A DNA stretch of 64,000 bases from Phallusia mammillata (lineage: Eukaryota). The stretch covers positions 15,128,001-15,192,000 of the forward strand of contig OZ281501.1 of the NCBI GenBank assembly GCA_965637545.1. The letters are read 5' to 3'. Below are positions 52,418 through 64,000 of this stretch, one piece after another (position 1 is the stretch's first letter; the number at the start of each line of letters is the position of its first letter). The notes under the pieces were generated by a model. It ran no database searches, was not told the DNA's origin, and worked only from the letters and a program-made list of their open reading frames with translations. The position numbers and the translations under genes were made by a program.

Positions 52418-52556
52418 TTAAATTGCTTTTGTTTTTGATGAACACCTTGGTTTTGAATATATATGTAGGCTACGTATATTAATATCAACTTGGTGTATTT
52501 TGTTTCTAATTGTGCTAAATCATAAGATGGGAACCGTTTTATTTCCGTATGCGCAG

Positions 52557-52687
52557 CGAGGACCCTGGAATGATCTACAAGGAAGCTTTAACTACTACCG
52601 TGAAAACGAAAGCTCTCACTGAAGAGGAAAGAAAACGTATGAAAGCGGAACAGAAAGATTTCAGATCGAATCTTGTTCGTACTGTTG
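52557..52687 (+). CDS. MYLK: Exon 28, TVKTKALTEEERKRMKAEQKDFRSNL repeat
   Basis: gcgcag| acceptor, G|gtaagt donor; hallmark MLCK actin-binding repeat. Confidence 0.93.
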
Positions 52688-53134
52688 GTAAGTTTAATGT
52701 CTAAAAGTTTTCATAGATAGAAAACAAAAATTTCTAAACGGTTTCTTCTAAACTTGAATCACATTAATAAGAGTGTAGAGTTGTTTAATAAACAAAAGTA
52801 AACGTAGTTTCGTTTTACTTTTTAACAAATCTACGTATTTGAACAAAAACCAGTTAACATACTTGCTTCTATAAATTTAAATTTCATCCATCATTAGCTT
52901 GTGCTGCTTTGTTTTTAACTAACACATTCCCGCCGATAAAAACTGTGCTATGCAGTGTAAAGTTAAAATGTTTACGTTTTCTTGAAATACTTTTTAGCAG
53001 CTTGCAATTTCAGTAACTTAACAATACAGAACAACAGCTACTTACGATACTTTGTCTTTTTCATCTTTTCATTTAACAGGCTTAATAACCTTAACACCAT
53101 AAAAAAACCTTTTCCACTTTTCACTCACCTTTAG

Positions 53135-53346
53135 TAAATCCTGAACACGCAGAGACGAAAACCGATGTAAAAAGTCGAGGACCGGAACAAAAAGACTTCC
53201 GGGACGAAGCGTTGAAGACTAAAGTGCAGACCAAGGCATTGGGTCAAGAAGATTACAAAATCATGCACGGAGAACAAAAGGACTTTAGATCAGAAACTAT
53301 CAAAAGCAAAGTTGTCACTAAGTCGTACAACGAGGATTTGGTGAAG
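53135..53346 (+). CDS. MYLK: Exon 29, two variant repeats (EQKDFRDEAL, EQKDFRSETI)
   Basis: ctttag| acceptor, AAG|gtataa donor. Confidence 0.92.
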
Positions 53347-53693
53347 GTATAAGAAAATATGACTTTTAGTTGAAGCAATTGTTTGTGTAGTGGTTTGCTG
53401 TACTTTGTATGTGTAAATAACGTGCACCACTATTGGTACTGTTTACAAATGTAAACAGTGTGGAGTATGTGGGAGAATTTTGGTTTAATTTCTACTCAAA
53501 ACTTAAGGGAAAATCTTTAAAGAGTTTAAAAAAGCCTTTTATTTCTGCTTAAGTAGGCGTTATTAAGGTGTCGTTTCGTGTATGCTGGAATAGTTTAATC
53601 CCATTTTTTTCCTTATTCTCATGTGCTAAAAATAGAAGTTTTTGCAGTTAAAATGACACAAACATTAGTGAACACTGTTTCTTATATCTGTAG

Positions 53694-53984
53694 GCAAAAC
53701 GCGCCGAACAAAAGGATTTCCGGAACGTTCTTTCTCCGACTAAACGCGAAGGGGATGAGGATAAGCATAAAGATACGGAGCATGGAGGTACATTGAAACT
53801 AGCGGAACTGCCGAAAGCAAAATGGAAGAAGGGATCAACCATGGACCACAACACAGTAGCAACAAAACGTTCACGTCGTCGGGAAGTTGTCCCTGAGAGG
53901 AAGATCCAGCAAAATGGCGATGAACAGGACGAGGAACCAGTTGGAACTAAACCTCAGTTTGTTCAACCTTTGGCTGATATGGAG
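53694..53984 (+). CDS. MYLK: Exon 30, EQKDFRNVL repeat, charged linker, start of Ig13
   Basis: ctgtag| acceptor, GAG|gtaaga donor; ends GTKPQFVQPLADME. Confidence 0.92.
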
Positions 53985-54546
53985 GTAAGATATAATGGTC
54001 TTCTTGTCTGAAGGTGCATTTTTGGAATAAGTTAAAAATCGAAAGCTAACAGCCTGGCTATACTAGCCTTTACGGCTATTGTCTGGTCACCAGCAGCACT
54101 AATTAGACCATGTATGCCAAAACGTTGTATACTGTCTTCTCCCATTTAGTTAAGTTGTGCCGAACTGTTCACAGTAAAATAGGAACCAAAAATTAGTCGA
54201 GAAATCGTCCTTTACCGCCCTGTACCTAATACTAGAATTAAATTTTTATTCTTATGGGAAAACCCAACAAATAAGTTTACGCAAAGCAATCCAGATAATA
54301 TATCACCGTGCCACAACTTGTATGATCAAAACAATAGTTGATGTTAATTGTGAAATAAAACAAAATAAATATAATATCCGCTCGGACAAAGTAACAACCG
54401 AATCCAGATTAGGCTATAAAAATACAAGTGGAAAAATTCTCTGTGATTGTGATTCGTCCGCGACGTACAACACAAAATCAATTATTTCATGTTATGGTTA
54501 TCCGAACATGTTCTTTTAACAAATTGTTGTGCATTTTTTTTCACAG

Positions 54547-54670
54547 AACAAAGACGGTGAACCGTTCGAGCTTGTTTGTCACGTGACTGGAGAGCCAAGG
54601 CCCGAGATCACGTGGTTTCTTGAGGATGAAGAAGTAAAGGCCGAAGCCGATATTGCTATCACATACGAAG
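54547..54670 (+). CDS. MYLK: Exon 31, Ig13 middle (ELVCHVTGEPRPEITWFL)
   Basis: tcacag| acceptor, G|gtaaat donor. Confidence 0.93.
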
Positions 54671-55168
54671 GTAAATACAAGGCTTAAAATGGAAAATGCT
54701 TTCTGGTTAATGTTATTGTTCAACTAGGAAGTCAAACTTTTTTGTGTGTGCTAATAACCGCGTTTCCTTGTAACGGTTGCAATTGTTGATGTTTGACGTT
54801 GTTAGGGACTTTGTCTGACTTTGTGATTTCCTTAAAAAAAGCACATTTTGTTTTCCATTTTAATTTTTTTCCTGTATTTACGAATTTCACCCCCCTTGGT
54901 CAAGATAGAGTAATTCAAAATTCTTCAAGTTTTCGCTATTGTTGGTTATTATACATTTTGATCCCTGTTGAAGCCTAAAAATCGTTTTAGCAATGATCGT
55001 TTCTAAGCCAAAATTTAGGCACAAAGATTGACCATTTTATTAATATGTTTGTTGCATTCCACAGAGATTGTCAAAACCAATTTAATAAATCATATTCAAG
55101 CCGCTATAAAGATGTCTATCACATTTTTACATGAAAACTGTGATTTTTATGAAACTTTGCTTTTTCAG

Positions 55169-55291
55169 GGGATGTGTGCCGACTGTCTGTGACGGAGAGC
55201 TTTCCAGAGGACCAGGGTAGATACAGTTGCACAGCCCGGAACGACCACGGGCAGGTCACGTGCTCGTGTTACGTCACAGTGCTTACTGAGG
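55169..55291 (+). CDS. MYLK: Exon 32, Ig13 C-part (DVCRLSVTESFPEDQGRYSCTARNDHG); last MYLK exon found
   Basis: tttcag| acceptor, strong G|gtgagt phase-1 donor; read-through would give GESA-stop at 55303-55305. Confidence 0.93.
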
Positions 55292-55699
55292 GTGAGTCGG
55301 CGTGATCTCTAGCGCCGCTGCGTGGAGCCCCTGCCGTAGCGAGACAAGAAAAAATTCGAAACAAAAAACTCTGACCAGATTTGCGGCGCGTGCGTAAGAC
55401 AGAACAGACACCTTTTCACTCCCCCCTGCTTGCACCCCCAAACCACCCCCGAAATGCTTTTACCCTTTTTACCATTCATATATTATTCTACTTCTTATTA
55501 TTATTATTTGTATTGTTATCCGAAGGCCGACTAATTCTGTAGCTGCACCCGAAGTACCATTTGCGTTGCCAGCCGATTAACTGTGTATGAAAACGTGCAG
55601 GTGTTATTGCCGCAATTGAAACTTTCTATGCGTAGCTTCACTCCCCCAAAAAACCTTACGAAAAGCACCCTAATACTACCGCTCACGAAACCGTTGTAA

Positions 55700-55745
55700 A
55701 TTCTAACGTCATGATATGTGACGTCATGCTCGACCCCTCCCCCTT
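55700..55745. promoter_or_regulatory. CRE pair plus C-rich box downstream of exon 32
   Basis: ACGTCA 55706, TGACGTCA 55719, CCCCTCCCC following. Confidence 0.3.
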
Positions 55746-57714
55746 TTCATATGTGCTGCTTCAACTTGGTGGTGACGCAACAATAAAGGGCTATGATGTA
55801 AGAATGCATCTGTGTCTTTGTTGCTTAGTTCGAGGTCAGGCGAGATTTTAGTCAGGGATTTAGGCGGCTACGGTGGTCCAGGCTTCACGCGGCGCTCGCT
55901 TATGTGTTCTGCTATGATTGTGATGCCACAGCGATGTGCACGCGTCGAAGCATGCATTGCGATTTGGCGTAGATTGTGGTGTGAGAGTAGAGCAGTGCAG
56001 ATGCATTTAAGATTATGGAAGTAACTGATGATTTTTATGAATAAGTGATTATTGTCAACAATACAAAGTTATCTACAGTGAAAATAGCTCTCGAAGAAGG
56101 CTTGTACATCCACCTACTACTGTAAACATAAAGTTTTTAAAGCGAAACCAAAAAATGATTATTTAGTCAAGCATTACTGGTGGTCCATATACAAATTTAG
56201 GGTAACATAGATTTTTTCCTAACAAATATTACTAGCGTTAGACATTTTAACATTTTCATCACACTAGAAGCGGCATAGAGCCACTTGCAAAGTAAAGTCG
56301 AAACGTTGGTTCACAAACAAAGGATAATACGTTGAAAAGTAAACCTTGACAGCTGTTTCAGAATACTTGTTGCAGTTCTTCACAGAGTTTAGGTAATTGC
56401 GTACAACAAACACACAGCGCTTTGTATTTCACGTATAAAGCACCTGCAACTGTTTATCTTATTACAATCTACTTGTATTTCCACGTTGAAAGCAAACGAT
56501 CGAACAATACGACAAAAGAGGCTTTGAAATTCCAGAACACAAGAAACAAAAAAAAACTATCTTTTTTGACTTCGTGAATACAAAGCTAATAACGTTGAAC
56601 ATCTTTAATCGTTCAAACACTTTTCAAAGGTATTTTGTAACTAATACACAAACCTTATTTCATATGTTACAAAATAGTTTTTAATTAGTCAGTTAAAAAC
56701 CCACTAAATGAAAAGCTTAAGAATAGATTCAAACCTGGCAATTCAATATCGAAATTTTACACAACCTTAAACATATCTTAACTTTCGACAAACAAACTTC
56801 TTGCATAAGTATTTGGCAACTTGCGCGTGTAAACGAGCCATAGTAGTGGGAGAAGGAAAGAGAAAGGCAGGAGGAGCAGGGAGCGTAACCTACATCCGGA
56901 TGGGGGAGATTTGTTGCCAACTAAAATACTGAGCTTCAAACTGCCGCTAAAATGCGTGGGATTTTAAAGCTGTTGCGCAGGGTAGTTATGGCAACGGAGC
57001 ATATTGCTTTTTACAAACGTACGAAAAAGTGCATTAAATACAAGCTTTGCATTTTCTGTAGAGCTTTTGCGTACACTAGTTCGTAAAATGTGAGGCATAT
57101 ATTTTCGTTTTAGGTCATTTTTTTGCTTACATTCTTTTGAATTGTTCTTGTAGGACGCTTTGAATCAATGGCAGTCAGAAGTCCCTTTACATTAATTTGA
57201 TTTTATTTCTTACGACGGAGGGCTATAAACCTTATGCCTTGCTGTCAGTATGGTTTACGATTGCATTGGGCCCTATCAATTATCGATGGAAATGTCATTA
57301 CATTGGGTAATTACAGGCTGACGATTCCTCTTGATTTACTTGTCTCTCATCAGATCCGCGGTGTTAATGCTGTAAATGTAGTAAGGTTTATTCAAAGCAG
57401 TTGCCAGTGAAAAATGGTAAGGTTAAAAAATACAAAGAACATTTATCAATATCTAACTTTTTATGGCGATGGCCCTATACAGGCTAAACTTGTGCCAGTA
57501 CCAGATTGGCCGCTATTTAACACGAGGTAATTGAGTTTCCGCTTCACTACACGATATAATGTGTGATCGATTTATCTGCTAATCCTGTTGTTATGAGGAT
57601 TATATATGTGAGGAATAGCGTTTATTCAGAAACTTAAGAAACCAAACACACTAAAACTTTCATAAATCGACCTAAATACACACTAAACGTACCCCTTACA
57701 AAAATATGTATTAC

Positions 57715-57863
57715 TTTGGAACACTACATACGGATCTGTTCATAAGTTTAATTTATGAAAATAACGGTGCATTTTAACGTGTGTAATTGATGTGGCTGTC
57801 ATTTGAACAATAAAGCATGTCGCTTTTTACTTTCATTTGGGCCGTCATTTTTATCATTAAATG
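57715..57863. mobile_element. Same repeat family, inverted arrangement
   Basis: TTTGGAACACTACATACGGATCTGTTCATAAGTTTAA ... TTTGAACAATAAAGCATGTCGC...TTTGGGCCGTCATTTT. Confidence 0.72.
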
Positions 57864-60800
57864 TATTACCTTACATTTGAAAAGAATAACGTTACTATTG
57901 CCAATAAGGTGACAACGAACTAGTGTGGCAATATGATTATTTAGCAAATTTGGTTTTGTAAACATTGTTGTCTATCTCGTTGCTTGGTTGCCAACTGTCA
58001 AAGTGTACAATCCACAAAAATGGAGACACGCACGAACCGAGGTTGGAACAGGAAATTGCAGGCCGCACTCGCAAAGGCCCTTTCATGTAAACGCCGCATT
58101 ATATCACACTGTAGCCATATGCAGTAAAGCATGACTGCTGGTGGCCCTAACTACTGTCTGCAGGCTGTGCTTGCATGAAAAACCGTGCGACTGGAAGGTT
58201 ACGTTGTGCAAAGCAGGATATGTTATGGCTTGATCTTATTTCAAAGTTTAGTTGTGTGTAGCTATAGGCATAAGTTGGCAGTGCAATAGGAGTCGAATGG
58301 CGTTAAGCAGTGATTGGCCTTTCTGTTTTCCAAAGTGTTTCTTAAGACTAGTATAACATCAGTGAAATATGTAGTGTGTCAAAAAGCAGTGTTTGATTAC
58401 TCTTGGGCATTGGCCGTGTTTTAGTCAATAGTTTGTCAGTTAAACAATCATACAAATACAGTGACAAAGTTGGGAAAGCGATTGTTTGGTGAGGTAACCT
58501 GTTCGTTAATGTTTTGTACACAAGCCTGGAGACAAAAAAAGTCGCGTAAAACATATCAATAGTAAGTTCTCAAACTTACATGGCAGTTGTACATAAATAG
58601 TATGCTAAAAAAATGTCTTAAAATGTAGTCAATATCCTTATAGGCAGTGATTACACAGAGGAAAGGTCCAGAAGTACCCTGTGCACATCTTGCAATAAAC
58701 AAACTGGCCGGAAATATATCATCTGTTAAACTGTCGTTTTTGACCAGAAGTTGCTGAGTAACGACAGCAAAAGGCAAAAGGCAAAAGGCGGAAGTCAAAC
58801 TCTGTATAAAGTTACCGTAAAATGTTCAACAAGTGATTAAGCGGCACCTAACAAGTGGTTACTGCAGAAAACATAAGTAACGAATTTCTACATAAACACA
58901 TACAACATCGTTCGGCTTTAGTAAGATCATGGAAAGATAAACAGTGTAGGCGTTGAGTTGAAACTGAAAGAATCCAAAAACGCGGTAAAGTGTAACAAAG
59001 TGGATTGTGTTTGTTTAAGTTAGTTAGAACTTTAGTAAACAACAGTATTTGTAGGATAGCATACGTTCCAAATTTTAACTAAACTAAATCTTTTTTTTAC
59101 CTAACATGATTTAGAATTTGTTACCAGTATTCCTACAGTGTCCAGCATTTCACAGAATTATTTGTTAGGTAGCTTTTTCATCATACTTGCCATACTTCAA
59201 TTTTTTATGGCGTGATTTTAATATCCTTGCCAACGATCGTTCATGCTTGACAACGTTCCAATGAACAATTAATTCTAGAATTTGCGGTCACCATGAGTAT
59301 GACGTCGTTCCTGGTGATAGCTATTGTTTCTTAGTTCTTTCTGCGTCGCTGCTTAATCATGGGGGAATGTGTTTAGGTACAACAATAGCGTTGGGCTTAA
59401 GATAGTGTCTGTAGCATGCGGTGGTAACTAAATAACTGATTTTAAATCTGGTTTGCCTAATGTTTTTCACTGTGAGTTTTGTAAAATCACTCAAAAAAGT
59501 GAAAGATATATCTGCAATGTAGGTTCTATACGTTTACAAGTTTCAGAAATGAACTTTTACCCTGACTTTATCAAGGTATCCGACAGATATTTTTGATTTT
59601 CACTTACAACTTGGTTAGTAAAATCTCTGTCGATTTAGTATTGTCGTGTCCAGTTCATGAAGCTATTCTAGGCCTACGTGATAATTTAGGTTAAGTTTGA
59701 TTTGTGGTAAAACTAGTAGAAAAACAACACAGTAATTACCAAGCCGCTAATATATCGTTAGATTTATATGAAAAAATGTCTCCGTTTAAGTTCCATTGCA
59801 CTATAGTTGCATCATGGTTACATTTTATATGTAATCAACGAGTTTTAGCTGTGAATTGATATTCTTGGCTTTGCTTGCATATAAATGGCACACTTATAGG
59901 TCAATGTGGCTCTTATTGGGTGGCAGTAATTGTGGACAAAATATTTCGTTTCACACTAGCTAAACAGCTAGAGTAAAAACTATTTTAAATGCTTTGACAT
60001 AAATTATTACCATTTAGTCGATGTAGTGTATCCACCAGTTATATATAAAAAGTGCTATTATTTGCCACTGGACCATTACGCTGTAAAACCAAGTTCTAAA
60101 TTTGAATTCTATTTTATCTCACAACGGATTTGGGTTTTCCGAAAAACGAAGAATGTCTCGCTTTCTAATCCGCCTATCCCTCGACCGCAGTAAAATAGAA
60201 CCACAGTTAAGTCGTATTAGCATACAACGTCGCCCGTTATAGGTTGTATTTTCCAGCTCAGTCGCCTTCAAGACGTTTACGTTACACGTTGTCACTTCAT
60301 GAACGGTCTGACTCGTGTCTAAATTAGCCTTGTCGATCGATCAGTGAAATTTCGGTCAACTTTTGATCAATGCATGCGATGATGCTAACATGTACGTGAT
60401 CTTTAACTTTGGCAAGGTCATGTCACTATTTTTGTATACTATACTTCATTTGTTTACAAAATGAAAATTGGATGGAAAGTCACCGACTGCAAGGTTTCAA
60501 AGCTGAAAAATTCTTGATCAGTACACAACTATTAGGCAATGGTTTCAAAAGATGTACATTTTCTTGAATCAGGAATCTGATGGTACAAGCCAGGCAAAAT
60601 GTTTATTAATAACCATACGGACTGATTTTGTTTTTCACAAGGATTTAAAGCTCAAGGGTTGTATATTACTCAGGTATTCGTCCACTTAAGTGTAGATCAA
60701 TATTTAATATTTGGGCTCTTCTGGTAATATCCTCATCCTAATAATCAATATTTGTTTATTTGGGCCGTCATTTGTAAGTTTCAAATGGCTAATACGGCAG

Positions 60801-63319
60801 CTCGGAAAAAGCTATGAGCATTATGGTAATTTAAACAGTTTTATTAACCTGGTTGTTTTATGTACCTTTGCTCAAACAGCTCTGCCCGTTTGCCATTGCC
60901 CTGCGTACATTAGACATGCCATTTTTAAGAGGAAGTGATTGTTACTCAACTTAAACAAATAAACAAAACGTTTGAGAGGAAACCGTACTTCCACCCCAGT
61001 GCTTGTAATATACAGGTCTTGTGTGCAAAATTTTTCCAGTAAAACCAAGAACATTTTTTGTCTGCAATCCCCACTGGTCATAGGGTAATCACTTCGTCAC
61101 ACAAATTCCCTGTAAAACTGTGGCAACGTACATAACACGACCGGAAAAGTTTCACGCCTAAGTTACTTTCCTACGACCTATTATTAATAACATCCACTTT
61201 GTATAATTCTAGGCTAAATATAACTGGAATATCCTTAAACAGACACTTGCAAAAGTCATATCAAGAACTTTTTTTAAGGTGAAATTAAACAATCTTTTTA
61301 CTTGTCGTGTGTCACATAGCAACTGTTAAATAAGTTCATTATGGGTCCTCTTCCATGATATTCCACCTTTCTAGTTAGAAAGCATTAAAGGAGATTTTAA
61401 CTAACAATAGCCGTTAGTTCAATTCGAATCCAACATTGTTGCTTATCGCAATTATGTGTGATCAAATGCCTACTTCGAGGCATTTACTAATCTTAAACTA
61501 CGGCTGTTCGCGAAATGGAAGCATGGTAATTGGGATATCTTTTAAATTAGCAACATAGCCACTTCAGGAAAATGACACTGTTTAGGTTTCCGAACGGGGC
61601 ATTTGTATTGAACTTTCACCTTAGAAAGTGCAGGCCAACATGAATCAGTGTTTTCTAAACTTACAAATTCAGTCATAGATAAAGCATGTGAAGGACAAAA
61701 ATATCTAAGCGCTACTAAGAATTTGATTAATTGGTTTTCGGCACATGACAGGAAGAGCGGACCCCATGACTTTCAGTTCGATGGAGCTTCAGATATCATA
61801 GTTATTACCTACTTATAAGATAGGGTAGTTTGTATTCAGTGGTTGTGCACATGCATAATATCGTTATGTAAGTGCATCTATAAGAATGTGTGGAATTTGC
61901 GAGAGTAGAATCTTTGATTATCGTATTTCTGACCCGTGTTCAGCCAGCCATGTTCTTTGCCTACTCTTGAACTAGTTCGATGTTTTCAAGCAACACACAC
62001 ATGCTGCATAGGGACTAACTTTCCAGTTTGCAAGAATTTGCAACAAGGCAACTTAGAAAATTCGTACATCTTGGCCTTGTATCAGTTACTACGCATTGTT
62101 TGCATTTTGAAATCAATTCCAATTTAGCTGCTACACTTTTATTGTGTGCAGTTAGGTTTGGACTAATTTTCTTGATGTAACATTGGTTTGTTGTGCAAAA
62201 GCTCAAATGCAACTGCTGGAAATATGCTGAATGCTAAAATACATCTGCAACCGCAAAATCAGATTTTCGCTACTTGAAGAAACCCATTGTTTTGGTCGCG
62301 ACTTATCTTAAGGACATTATAGCCTTTGGGCTTTAGCACAAAGTTTCAGGTTTATTGCCGAAGTTTTTTCATATTTAACATATACTTAGAGGTTTTTATT
62401 GTTGGATATAGTTTCAGAGTGGAAAGATGTGTTCGATTATTTCGATAGTGTCAGGATTGTTATTGCCACCATAATATTTGGACAATAAGCAGGCAGGAAA
62501 GAGCTTTTCCATGTTACGCCGTGTTGTGCATGGATTGCTTGGAAGGTATTCAACAGTGCATTGGAACTTATATTTGCGAAATTGTTGATTAGGTCGGACA
62601 GTGCGCATCACTTGAACTGTAATATGTCTTCATGTTAATTAGCAAATCTGCTTCAAGCTACTTTTTTGTCAATGTGACTCTTTTGCTGTAAAAATTAAAA
62701 CTAGCTGGTTAGCTGGTTTTCGATTTAGCTTGGTTTAGAGATGTTAAAGAAACCGTATTTTGCAACACTGAAAAGATTTAGAGTGTAGCTGCAAACCGTG
62801 CACACTGTCTCGGCCTATTCAGTCTCATCACTCAAGCTGATAACAAGGCATTGGCGTATGGTCTAGTATAGCCAAAAAGTAACAGACTAAAAAGCACCCT
62901 TGTATAGGATGTGACATTTTATACACTATAGCAAACGTTGCCGAAATATTGTGTATATTCTTCGTGGGCTTGGCCCGTTTTTCAAAGTTATTCTTCTTGC
63001 AATGTGACAGTTATAAACGTGAAAAGTGTACTTGTGGCGTCATGAAACATACAGAAAGTTTGCCGGAAAACGAAACTGGTTACGGTCAAACCGTGGAGCT
63101 CCAGAGGATGTCACATACTTTCGACTATACGTAATCTTTAAAAAACATTCTCTTTGGTTGGGTAGATAGTAGTGAGAACTATGTGGGATATTTAACATAA
63201 TGTTTACCTTTGATTCCATGCAGATTTAACGTTAAATCTCCAAATCATTTACACTAAATTAAAAACCACAAAAATGTCACTGCAATTTAAACGTCCTTCG
63301 AAGGAAAGTTGAATCCAAG

Positions 63320-64000
63320 ATGGCTACTAAAATGGACACTATTATTTCTGCCCTCGACCGTGACGAACTCGATCACGTGATGGCGGTGCTCAACCGTGAC
63401 CGAGGCTTGCGTGACCGGGACCAGGAGAGGTTGGTTCGACTCAGAATGGACCTGGTCCGGGAAAAACGCAATGGGGCTTTAGTCGTGGGGCAGAATTATC
63501 ACCGCGACCCAAATTCTCGCTGCGCGCGTTGCCTGGGTGCTTTGGACCTATACGACCGGTGGGATAAACAAAAGGCGAGATGTTTTCTATGCAAACATCT
63601 CATCTGCAAAAAGTGTCGTGTTACAAAATGGAGGACGGAGTGGGAAGAGACGAGCGCCTTGATGCACGAAAAGGAGAATAAAAGAGAAATAGTTACGTCG
63701 AGTGCTCCTGTTTCTCCTGCAAGGAGCTTGGATAGACCGATCATAAAATCGGTTGCGGACGCCATGACTCAAACTGAAGTTAGCTGTGGCCCACTACAGA
63801 CGAACTGCCCTCTATGTGGTGAAATAAGAGAGGCTACCCCAGAAAAAAGCAAGCGGAAATCTACTACTGGTAGAAGGTCAATAGAAAAGTCTACGAAGAA
63901 AAAGAAAAAATCGAGCAGGTCAAAACAAAACGATAAGACGAACGTTGCTGTATCTCAAAGCAGAAGGAGTAAAACGCCGAAGGAAAATGCCAATTCGCTT
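63320..64000 (+). CDS. ORF open to window end with N-terminal Slp-homology/Rab-binding (FYVE_2-type) zinc-finger domain, then Ser/Lys/Arg-rich region
   Basis: Hand translation: MATKMDTIISALDRDELDHVMAVLNRDRGLRDRDQERLVRLRMDLVREKRNGALVVGQNYHRDPNSRCARCLGALDLYDRWDKQKARCFLCKHLICKKCRVTKWRTEW...; matches the SHD pattern L..EE...+L.VL.RD..LR..+..R+..L plus CxxC pairs of SYTL4/5, rabphilin, melanophilin; 227 codons, no stop; in-frame TAA at 63260 upstream. Confidence 0.8.
   Translation, partial: MATKMDTIISALDRDELDHVMAVLNRDRGLRDRDQERLVRLRMDLVREKRNGALVVGQNYHRDPNSRCARCLGALDLYDRWDKQKARCFLCKHLICKKCRVTKWRTEWEETSALMHEKENKREIVTSSAPVSPARSLDRPIIKSVADAMTQTEVSCGPLQTNCPLCGEIREATPEKSKRKSTTGRRSIEKSTKKKKKSSRSKQNDKTNVAVSQSRRSKTPKENANSL

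Follow-up and report, generated by a model that had tools for sequence, protein, structure and literature searches.

The window, i.e., the whole stretch of 64,000 nucleotides analysed here, ends inside an open reading frame (ORF) that codes for a Rab-binding domain (RabBD). Comparison with homologous loci of related species suggests that this ORF is probably a giant first coding exon that is spliced to the Ig, Fn3 and kinase exons of the MYLK-like gene surrounding it. The gene structure is well supported by the sequences of several species and is partly visible in the window; the transcript is a prediction. With about even chances, a clade that probably consists of tunicates possesses the complete system: a Rab-recruited protein of the myosin light chain kinase (MLCK) family, whose RabBD is split by an insert of ~500–900 residues and re-forms on folding, and which links Rab27/3/8 vesicles to myosin II via an Ig-Fn3-(pseudo)kinase-telokin module.

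The Rab-binding domain in the window

The ORF starts on the forward strand with the ATG at 63320 and stays free of stop codons for 227 codons up to base 64000, the end of the window. It had been noticed in the first-pass annotation as a hidden ORF without a stop before the window end; the peptide quoted there and the motifs CARC, CFLC and CKKC are indeed present. By chance, 227 open codons are expected with a probability of ~1.6e-6, given the window's stop-codon frequency of 0.057 per codon. On the upstream side, a stop at 63260–63262 closes this frame. An alternative start is the second ATG of the ORF at 63332, where the conserved block begins. Ordinary exon tracing had missed the ORF, and a large coding exon should be added to the gene track of the window. 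Its features are:

63320–64000, + strand: 5′ part of the putative giant first coding exon; no stop in its 227 codons up to the window end
63350–63460, + strand: SHD1 helix, aa 11–47, LDRDELDHVMAVLNRDRGLRDRDQERLVRLRMDLVR, aligned to SHD1 of melanophilin
63521–63616, + strand: zinc-finger Cys pairs 1–3, i.e., CARC (63521–63532), CFLC (63581–63592) and CKKC (63605–63616)
63617–64000, + strand: start of the long S/K/T/E/R-rich insert that lies between Cys pair 3 and Cys pair 4 plus SHD2

The Pfam profile FYVE_2 (PF02318) matches aa 11–110 of the ORF with 46.4 bits (gathering score 27.2; E 5e-12), and the match spans positions 2–92 of the 118 profile positions. By sequence, the closest solved relatives are melanophilin (2zet_C, in complex with Rab27B; E 1.8e-7) and then Slp4; a search of the protein atlas yielded weak FYVE_2, RIM and spire-like leads only. 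The SHD1 columns are conserved in the alignments A1 and A2, and the columns of Cys pairs 1–3 are invariant in both. In an AlphaFold2 model of the homologue P0002, the SHD1 region is helical (pLDDT 83–89). On sequence grounds, the ORF encodes a genuine Rab-GTPase-binding domain of the FYVE_2/Slp-homology family, and the earlier assignment to this family is borne out by the FYVE_2 match and by the matches to melanophilin and Slp4. As to the layout that had been proposed, SHD1 and three of the four Cys pairs are found in the window; the fourth pair and SHD2 lie outside of it, and the domain is therefore partial within the window.

Most of the ORF is of low complexity and predicted to be disordered. 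Its likeness to P0001 (1150 aa; 43% identity over 198 aa) nevertheless continues past the zinc finger with TSSAPV, DRP, TQT and CPLCG. The extra CPLC(G) inside the insert, at 63806–63817 of the window and at aa 200–203 of P0001, is absent from the other six family members.

A zinc finger in two pieces

When 1.84 billion representatives were searched exhaustively with phmmer, 22 proteins emerged, and the top nine clusters comprise P0001–P0005, P0007–P0009 and one fragment. The eight full-length relatives measure 737–1150 aa, each being encoded by one uninterrupted ORF on a genomic contig. Their Pfam content is FYVE_2 only, mostly in two separate stretches: the N-terminal parts correspond to FYVE_2 positions 1–91, the C-terminal parts alone to positions 89–116. 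Since the C-terminal pieces match exactly those profile positions that are missing from the N-terminal ones, the relatives contain an Slp-type RabBD in two parts. The fourth CxxC and the ‘SGxWF’ helix of SHD2 are present in 8/8 relatives. The corresponding consensus, W[VI]C[RK][VI]C...K[KS][TS]G[DEN]WF, is likewise found in all eight near the C-terminal end, 490–880 aa past the third CxxC, whereas in the canonical Slp-like relatives P0014, P0016 and P0018 the same motif follows after ~10 aa. The displaced motif, e.g., WVCKVCAKSLDLNKKSGDWF, closely resembles that of P0014 and P0018. The family alignment shows no variation in the zinc ligands, in the SHD1 columns or in the W.C..C...G.WF motif. 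What the family possesses is an Slp-type RabBD divided by a long, largely disordered insert of 490–880 residues. This division had been overlooked in the first-pass annotation.

The AlphaFold2 model of P0002 was built from the eight-sequence alignment. It is poor overall (mean pLDDT 46) and confident at residues 10–45, 60–100 and 580–605; the insert region has a pLDDT below 50. The top structural match is the zinc finger of Slp4 (53/53 residues, rmsd 2.0 Å, Z 6.8), followed by Rim2, the SHD of melanophilin and rabphilin, with structural Z values that are modest (5–7). Each structural alignment covers the model from residue ~60 to residues 594–609. In this model, the distant fourth knuckle and the helix pack onto the N-terminal finger and thereby re-form the zinc finger.

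The possibility that the insert is an unrecognised intron was ruled out, as it is open in 8/8 species and includes blocks that are conserved; 700 codons would stay open by chance with a probability of ~1e-18. The conserved blocks read EVMxRFLxMAGV, LTSTPxKxL and SPLxxASKLF (alignment A1; P0002 aa ~270–345 and 488–518). A basic ARKxRR helix, with a pLDDT of up to 84, is also predicted within the insert. These blocks and the helix may be binding sites.

Among the known Rab27 effectors, melanophilin and MyRIP (Slac2-a and -c) share with the family the N-terminal SHD1 helix, the two-zinc finger and SHD2, and melanophilin, the best solved match by sequence, is a structural match as well. They differ from it in that the family's finger is interrupted by the insert. 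With Slp1–5 and rabphilin-3A the family has the FYVE_2 RabBD in common. The tandem C2 domains that characterise Slp proteins and rabphilin were found in none of P0001–P0009. Nor did any of P0001–P0009 contain Rab_eff_C (PF04698), which binds myosin V/VII and actin, at E <0.01; this domain is present in the distant P0020.

The surrounding MYLK-like gene and the ends of the exon

Upstream of the ORF, the window contains the following features on the same strand (the slash marks the splice boundary):

52519–54008, + strand: MYLK-like exons with DFRxxL-like motifs, in the open segments 52519–52701, 53095–53349 and 53694–54008
54520–54684, + strand: first half of an Ig (I-set) domain ahead of the RabBD exon, with the motif CHVTGEPRPEITWF
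55169–55291, + strand: second half of the Ig domain, last MYLK exon before the RabBD ORF, phase-1 donor GAGG/GTGAGT
63203–63223, + strand: acceptor, pyrimidine-rich tract (70% pyrimidine) plus AG, gtttacctttgattccatgcag/ATTTAACG
63224–63319, + strand: leader of the RabBD exon; joined to 55169–55291 it adds 29 codons up to the TGA at 63310–63312

The limits given for 52519–54008 and for 54520–54684 are those of open frames, not exact exon limits. Four DFRxxL-like motifs, EQKDFRSNL, EQKDFRDEAL, EQKDFRSETI and EQKDFRNVL, are followed by an Ig domain. DFRxxL motifs and then Ig is the order of the short form of vertebrate MLCK, and a single vertebrate MYLK gene runs collinear with the whole succession DFRxxL, Ig, Ig, Fn3, kinase, Ig. 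Each of the motifs is preceded by EQK; they form an MLCK-type actin-binding repeat over the three open segments.

The same surroundings are met in the relatives. L002 and L003 have segments homologous to the DFRxxL exons, arranged in the same order, and 54520–54684 is 69% identical to L002 2282–2536. An exon homologous to 55169–55291 is located directly upstream of the RabBD ORF in L002, L003, L004, L005, L007 and L008. In these six species the ORF is succeeded, on its own strand, by two I-set half-exons and fn3, and then by Pkinase exons where the locus extends far enough (L002, L005, L007); L002 also shows a final I-set domain after the kinase, and for the P0009 locus an I-set ORF is listed downstream. 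The best true PDB match of the kinase exon is MYLK4, then twitchin. By this exon order, at least six other species have the RabBD ORF in a MYLK-like gene, within the intron that separates Ig1 from Ig2. The earlier placement of the ORF inside such a gene is sustained by the DFRxxL and Ig exons of the window together with the synteny in the six relatives. A position kept in at least six other species is taken to exclude a recent retrocopy and also an ordinary neighbouring Slp gene. The contigs of the closest relative, the species of P0001 (L001, L006, L009, L010), are short: they end 0.2–4.7 kb past the ORF, and no Ig exons were seen in them within 10 kb upstream of it.

Neither a mobile element nor an RNA gene is indicated in the 8-kb intron before the ORF, since Rfam yielded no match in the window at gathering score and the repeats in 55000–64000 are short chance pairs only. 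In MYLK introns of the relatives, ORFs of mobile elements were seen: three long ORFs at L003:12219–15765 (minus strand), Transposase_1 at L007:19797–20366 and RVT_1 at L008:18587–19093. They explain the variable length of these introns. Right after the Ig exon of the window, at 55300–56000, there is a GC-rich island (0.44–0.47 versus ~0.36 nearby), which harbours the full CRE palindrome TGACGTCA at 55719–55726 and a half site at 55706–55711. This island, which precedes the RabBD exon by ~7.5 kb, is a possible internal promoter.

The AG at 63222–63223 defines an exon start at 63224. The acceptor precedes the ATG by 96 nt, and either cis-splicing or a spliced leader could make use of it. Comparable acceptors are found upstream of the ATG at the other loci. 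It had been stated before that the acceptor at 63223 would continue the upstream frame for 29 codons to the TGA at 63310–63312, 7 nt before the ATG, and that the preceding exon has a phase-1 donor; both statements hold. A long transcript using this acceptor would thus terminate just ahead of the ATG, which leaves a tandem, operon-like reading open. The leader also contains an upstream ATG at 63272, which starts a uORF of 12 codons that ends at the same TGA as the upstream MYLK frame. Across the loci, the frame of the ORF is closed by a stop 2–19 codons before the ATG; L004 and L005 lack an in-frame phase-1 acceptor on the upstream side of the ATG, and in L002 the join of the upstream Ig exon to the RabBD exon stops after 6 codons. 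At 6/6 loci the ATG is found in a good, Kozak-like context at the start of the conserved block. An internal cassette exon, in frame with the upstream Ig exon, was considered and ruled out by the missing acceptors in L004 and L005 and by the stops before the ATG. The same stops and missing acceptors, together with the exon's own ATG, imply that translation begins at the exon's own start codon.

At the other end, conservation between the eight proteins ceases at ..[YH][VIL][PES]G, and the remaining 3–36 codons up to the stop are unrelated. A GT occupies codon positions 2–3 of this endpoint in 7/7 loci read, i.e., it is a phase-1 donor:

L001, CCAG/GTGGTG
L002, CCGG/GTAAAC
L003, GAAG/GTTTGT
L004, CCAG/GTGTGT
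L005, CCAG/GTTTTG
L007, TCAA/GTGTGA
L008, TCAG/GTGATT

In L007 the codon is AGT (Ser) instead of GGT; it is therefore the GT that is conserved, not the amino acid. The donor of the upstream Ig exon is of the same phase. A phase-1 acceptor opens the next Ig exon, at a distance of 105 nt in L004, ~180 nt in L005 and 420 nt in L002, and the joined product reads E/D-P-S-x-x-E at this exon. The distance is ~1 kb in L007 and L008 and 5.3 kb in L003, where the gap contains the ORFs resembling a mobile element. The phase match alone has a 1-in-3 chance per lineage. The conserved phase-1 GT at the end of conservation and the phase-1 acceptor on the next Ig exon favour an alternative first exon, which was one of three models put forward in the first-pass annotation; the case for it is a comparative one. 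SHD2, donor and kinase exons of the window's own gene would lie beyond 64000, and the window copy is expected to end like its orthologues. Word-index searches with P0001 residues 1–120 and with the A2 profile returned only P0001, and thus neither a transcript nor an annotated protein that joins the RabBD to the kinase parts; blanks of this kind say little.

Competing readings and functional meaning

Unlikely on the whole, yet foremost among the alternatives, is the idea of two tandem genes. The first, with the DFRxxL motifs and Ig, would end in the RabBD leader after use of the acceptor at 63223 and the TGA at 63310; the second, RabBD-Ig-Fn3-kinase-Ig, would share its primary transcript and be expressed by spliced-leader trans-splicing in an operon-like manner. 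The joins described above, with their stop after 29 codons in the window, 7 nt before the ATG, and after 6 codons in L002, would fit this idea, but the peptide added before the stop is unconserved, the phase-1 donor of the upstream Ig exon fits the same downstream acceptor, and the domain order is, as is generally known, collinear with one vertebrate MYLK gene. The fusion of RabBD and kinase is retained in the tandem model; the sole difference is the existence of a long isoform that skips the RabBD exon. Quite unlikely is a stand-alone single-exon gene nested in the MYLK intron, possibly a retrocopy, that leaves the GT unused and encodes a RabBD-only protein with a disordered middle part. That all eight homologues are uninterrupted, reach a stop 3–36 codons past the conserved ..VPG, contain no other Pfam domain and have their own ATG is what such a gene would look like. 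Its tails, however, would be the sequences past the GT, which are conserved neither in length nor in sequence, while the GT itself is kept in L007 despite the codon change. Moreover, in three species the next MYLK exon is just 105–420 nt away, with little room for a 3′ UTR and a poly(A) site. The intronless retrocopy, a second model of the first-pass annotation, is also disfavoured by the intron position and strand, which are the same in six or more species.

The two remaining explanations fare worse. An ordinary Rab27 effector in the neighbourhood, with the ORF as exon 1 of a gene of the synaptotagmin-like or melanophilin/MyRIP type that has C2 or Rab_eff_C exons downstream, is very improbable: the RabBD sequence is closest to melanophilin, Slp4 and Slp-like proteins, but in the relatives the same strand continues with I-set, fn3 and Pkinase exons, and 0/8 family members have C2 or Rab_eff_C, in contrast to the distant P0014, P0016, P0018 and P0020. 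These downstream exons equally disfavour the third earlier model, according to which the ORF opens the next gene, with C2 exons, after a kinase-less MYLK. The least probable reading of all is a decaying pseudogene or a chance ORF with a motif resembling a zinc finger. The low complexity and predicted disorder of most of the ORF might suggest it; it is refuted by a Pfam score well above the cut-off, by 737–1150 codons that stay open in eight or more diverged species, and by the invariant zinc ligands, SHD1 columns and W.C..C...G.WF.

According to the favoured reading, then, a giant first coding exon, ~0.7–1.15 thousand codons long in the relatives, would lie within the short-MLCK-like part of the MYLK-like gene, in the intron that separates the first Ig domain of this part from the second. 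Its 5′ end would be set either by an internal promoter or by trans-splicing of a spliced leader to the acceptor at 63223, and translation would begin at its own ATG. The exon would supply the RabBD in two pieces, the SHD1 helix with three zinc knuckles at the N-terminus and, far downstream, the fourth knuckle with the ‘SGxWF’ helix of SHD2. It would end at the phase-1 GT donor, from which an in-frame splice would lead to the MYLK exon that follows. The predicted product is RabBD - Ig - Fn3 - kinase(-like) - regulatory segment - Ig (telokin-like). Rabs of the Rab27/3/8 group, in their GTP-bound form, could then recruit the MLCK module to secretory vesicles and couple these to myosin II, be it by phosphorylation of the light chain or, where the kinase is degenerate, by means of a myosin-binding Ig/kinase scaffold.

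The state of the kinase deserves some caution. In L002 (17350–17517) the motifs are HLDLEPCN ... GFS, aligned to HFDIRPEN ... EFG of titin kinase; in L007 (22293–22424) they are YLTLEPKH ... GFG. Intact HxDLKPEN and DFG motifs were found in neither of these two relatives. Both kinases are devoid of the DFG aspartate and the catalytic-loop lysine, that of L007 also of the catalytic aspartate. What is kept are the N-lobe lysine and the motifs APE and DxWSxG. The kinases of titin and twitchin are CAMK-like and have Fn3 and Ig on their flanks; some of them are catalytically impaired. The catalytic-loop exon of L002 aligns best to titin kinase. Titin kinase has EFG for DFG, and L002 and L007 degenerate further; the overall gene layout, in contrast to that of titin, is MYLK-like. 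Judged by these motifs, the module of L002 and L007 is probably a conserved pseudokinase, and a kinase output appears doubtful in both. Binding to myosin II would still be possible through the telokin-like Ig and the kinase fold. The loss of key catalytic residues in two relatives had escaped the first-pass annotation; for those species, ‘vesicle-recruited MLCK-family module’ is a better term than its ‘myosin kinase’, a label that may overstate the output.

As a gene, the system resembles vertebrate MYLK, whose internal promoters give rise to short MLCK and telokin/KRP. A nested alternative 5′ exon and a shared C-terminal module are common to both, as are the DFRxxL motifs in the window gene and the Ig-Ig-Fn3-kinase-Ig order in the relatives; the difference is that the alternative exon here is a coding exon of 2–3.5 kb. 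We know of no vertebrate MLCK isoform with a Rab-binding domain, and a literature search found neither such an isoform nor any description of a RabBD-MLCK architecture. In its logic, a Rab-bound adaptor that links vesicles to a myosin system, the predicted protein is like melanophilin and MyRIP; instead of their motor-binding tail, its output would be an MLCK-type Ig-Fn3-kinase-Ig module directed towards myosin II. To our knowledge, Rab27/Rab3 effectors end in C2 domains, motor-binding tails or active-zone scaffolds, none of them in a protein-kinase module.

The divided RabBD is a natural case of a small zinc finger that accommodates several hundred extra residues between the final two of its metal-binding knuckles. 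The nesting of alternative 5′ exons known from MYLK would here have been used to swap the actin-binding head for a vesicle-binding one. If the splice is real, there is a direct link between Rab-marked secretory vesicles and the machinery that regulates myosin II. If this reading is true, it would represent a third solution, beside melanophilin and MyRIP, to the problem of coupling Rab vesicles to myosin.
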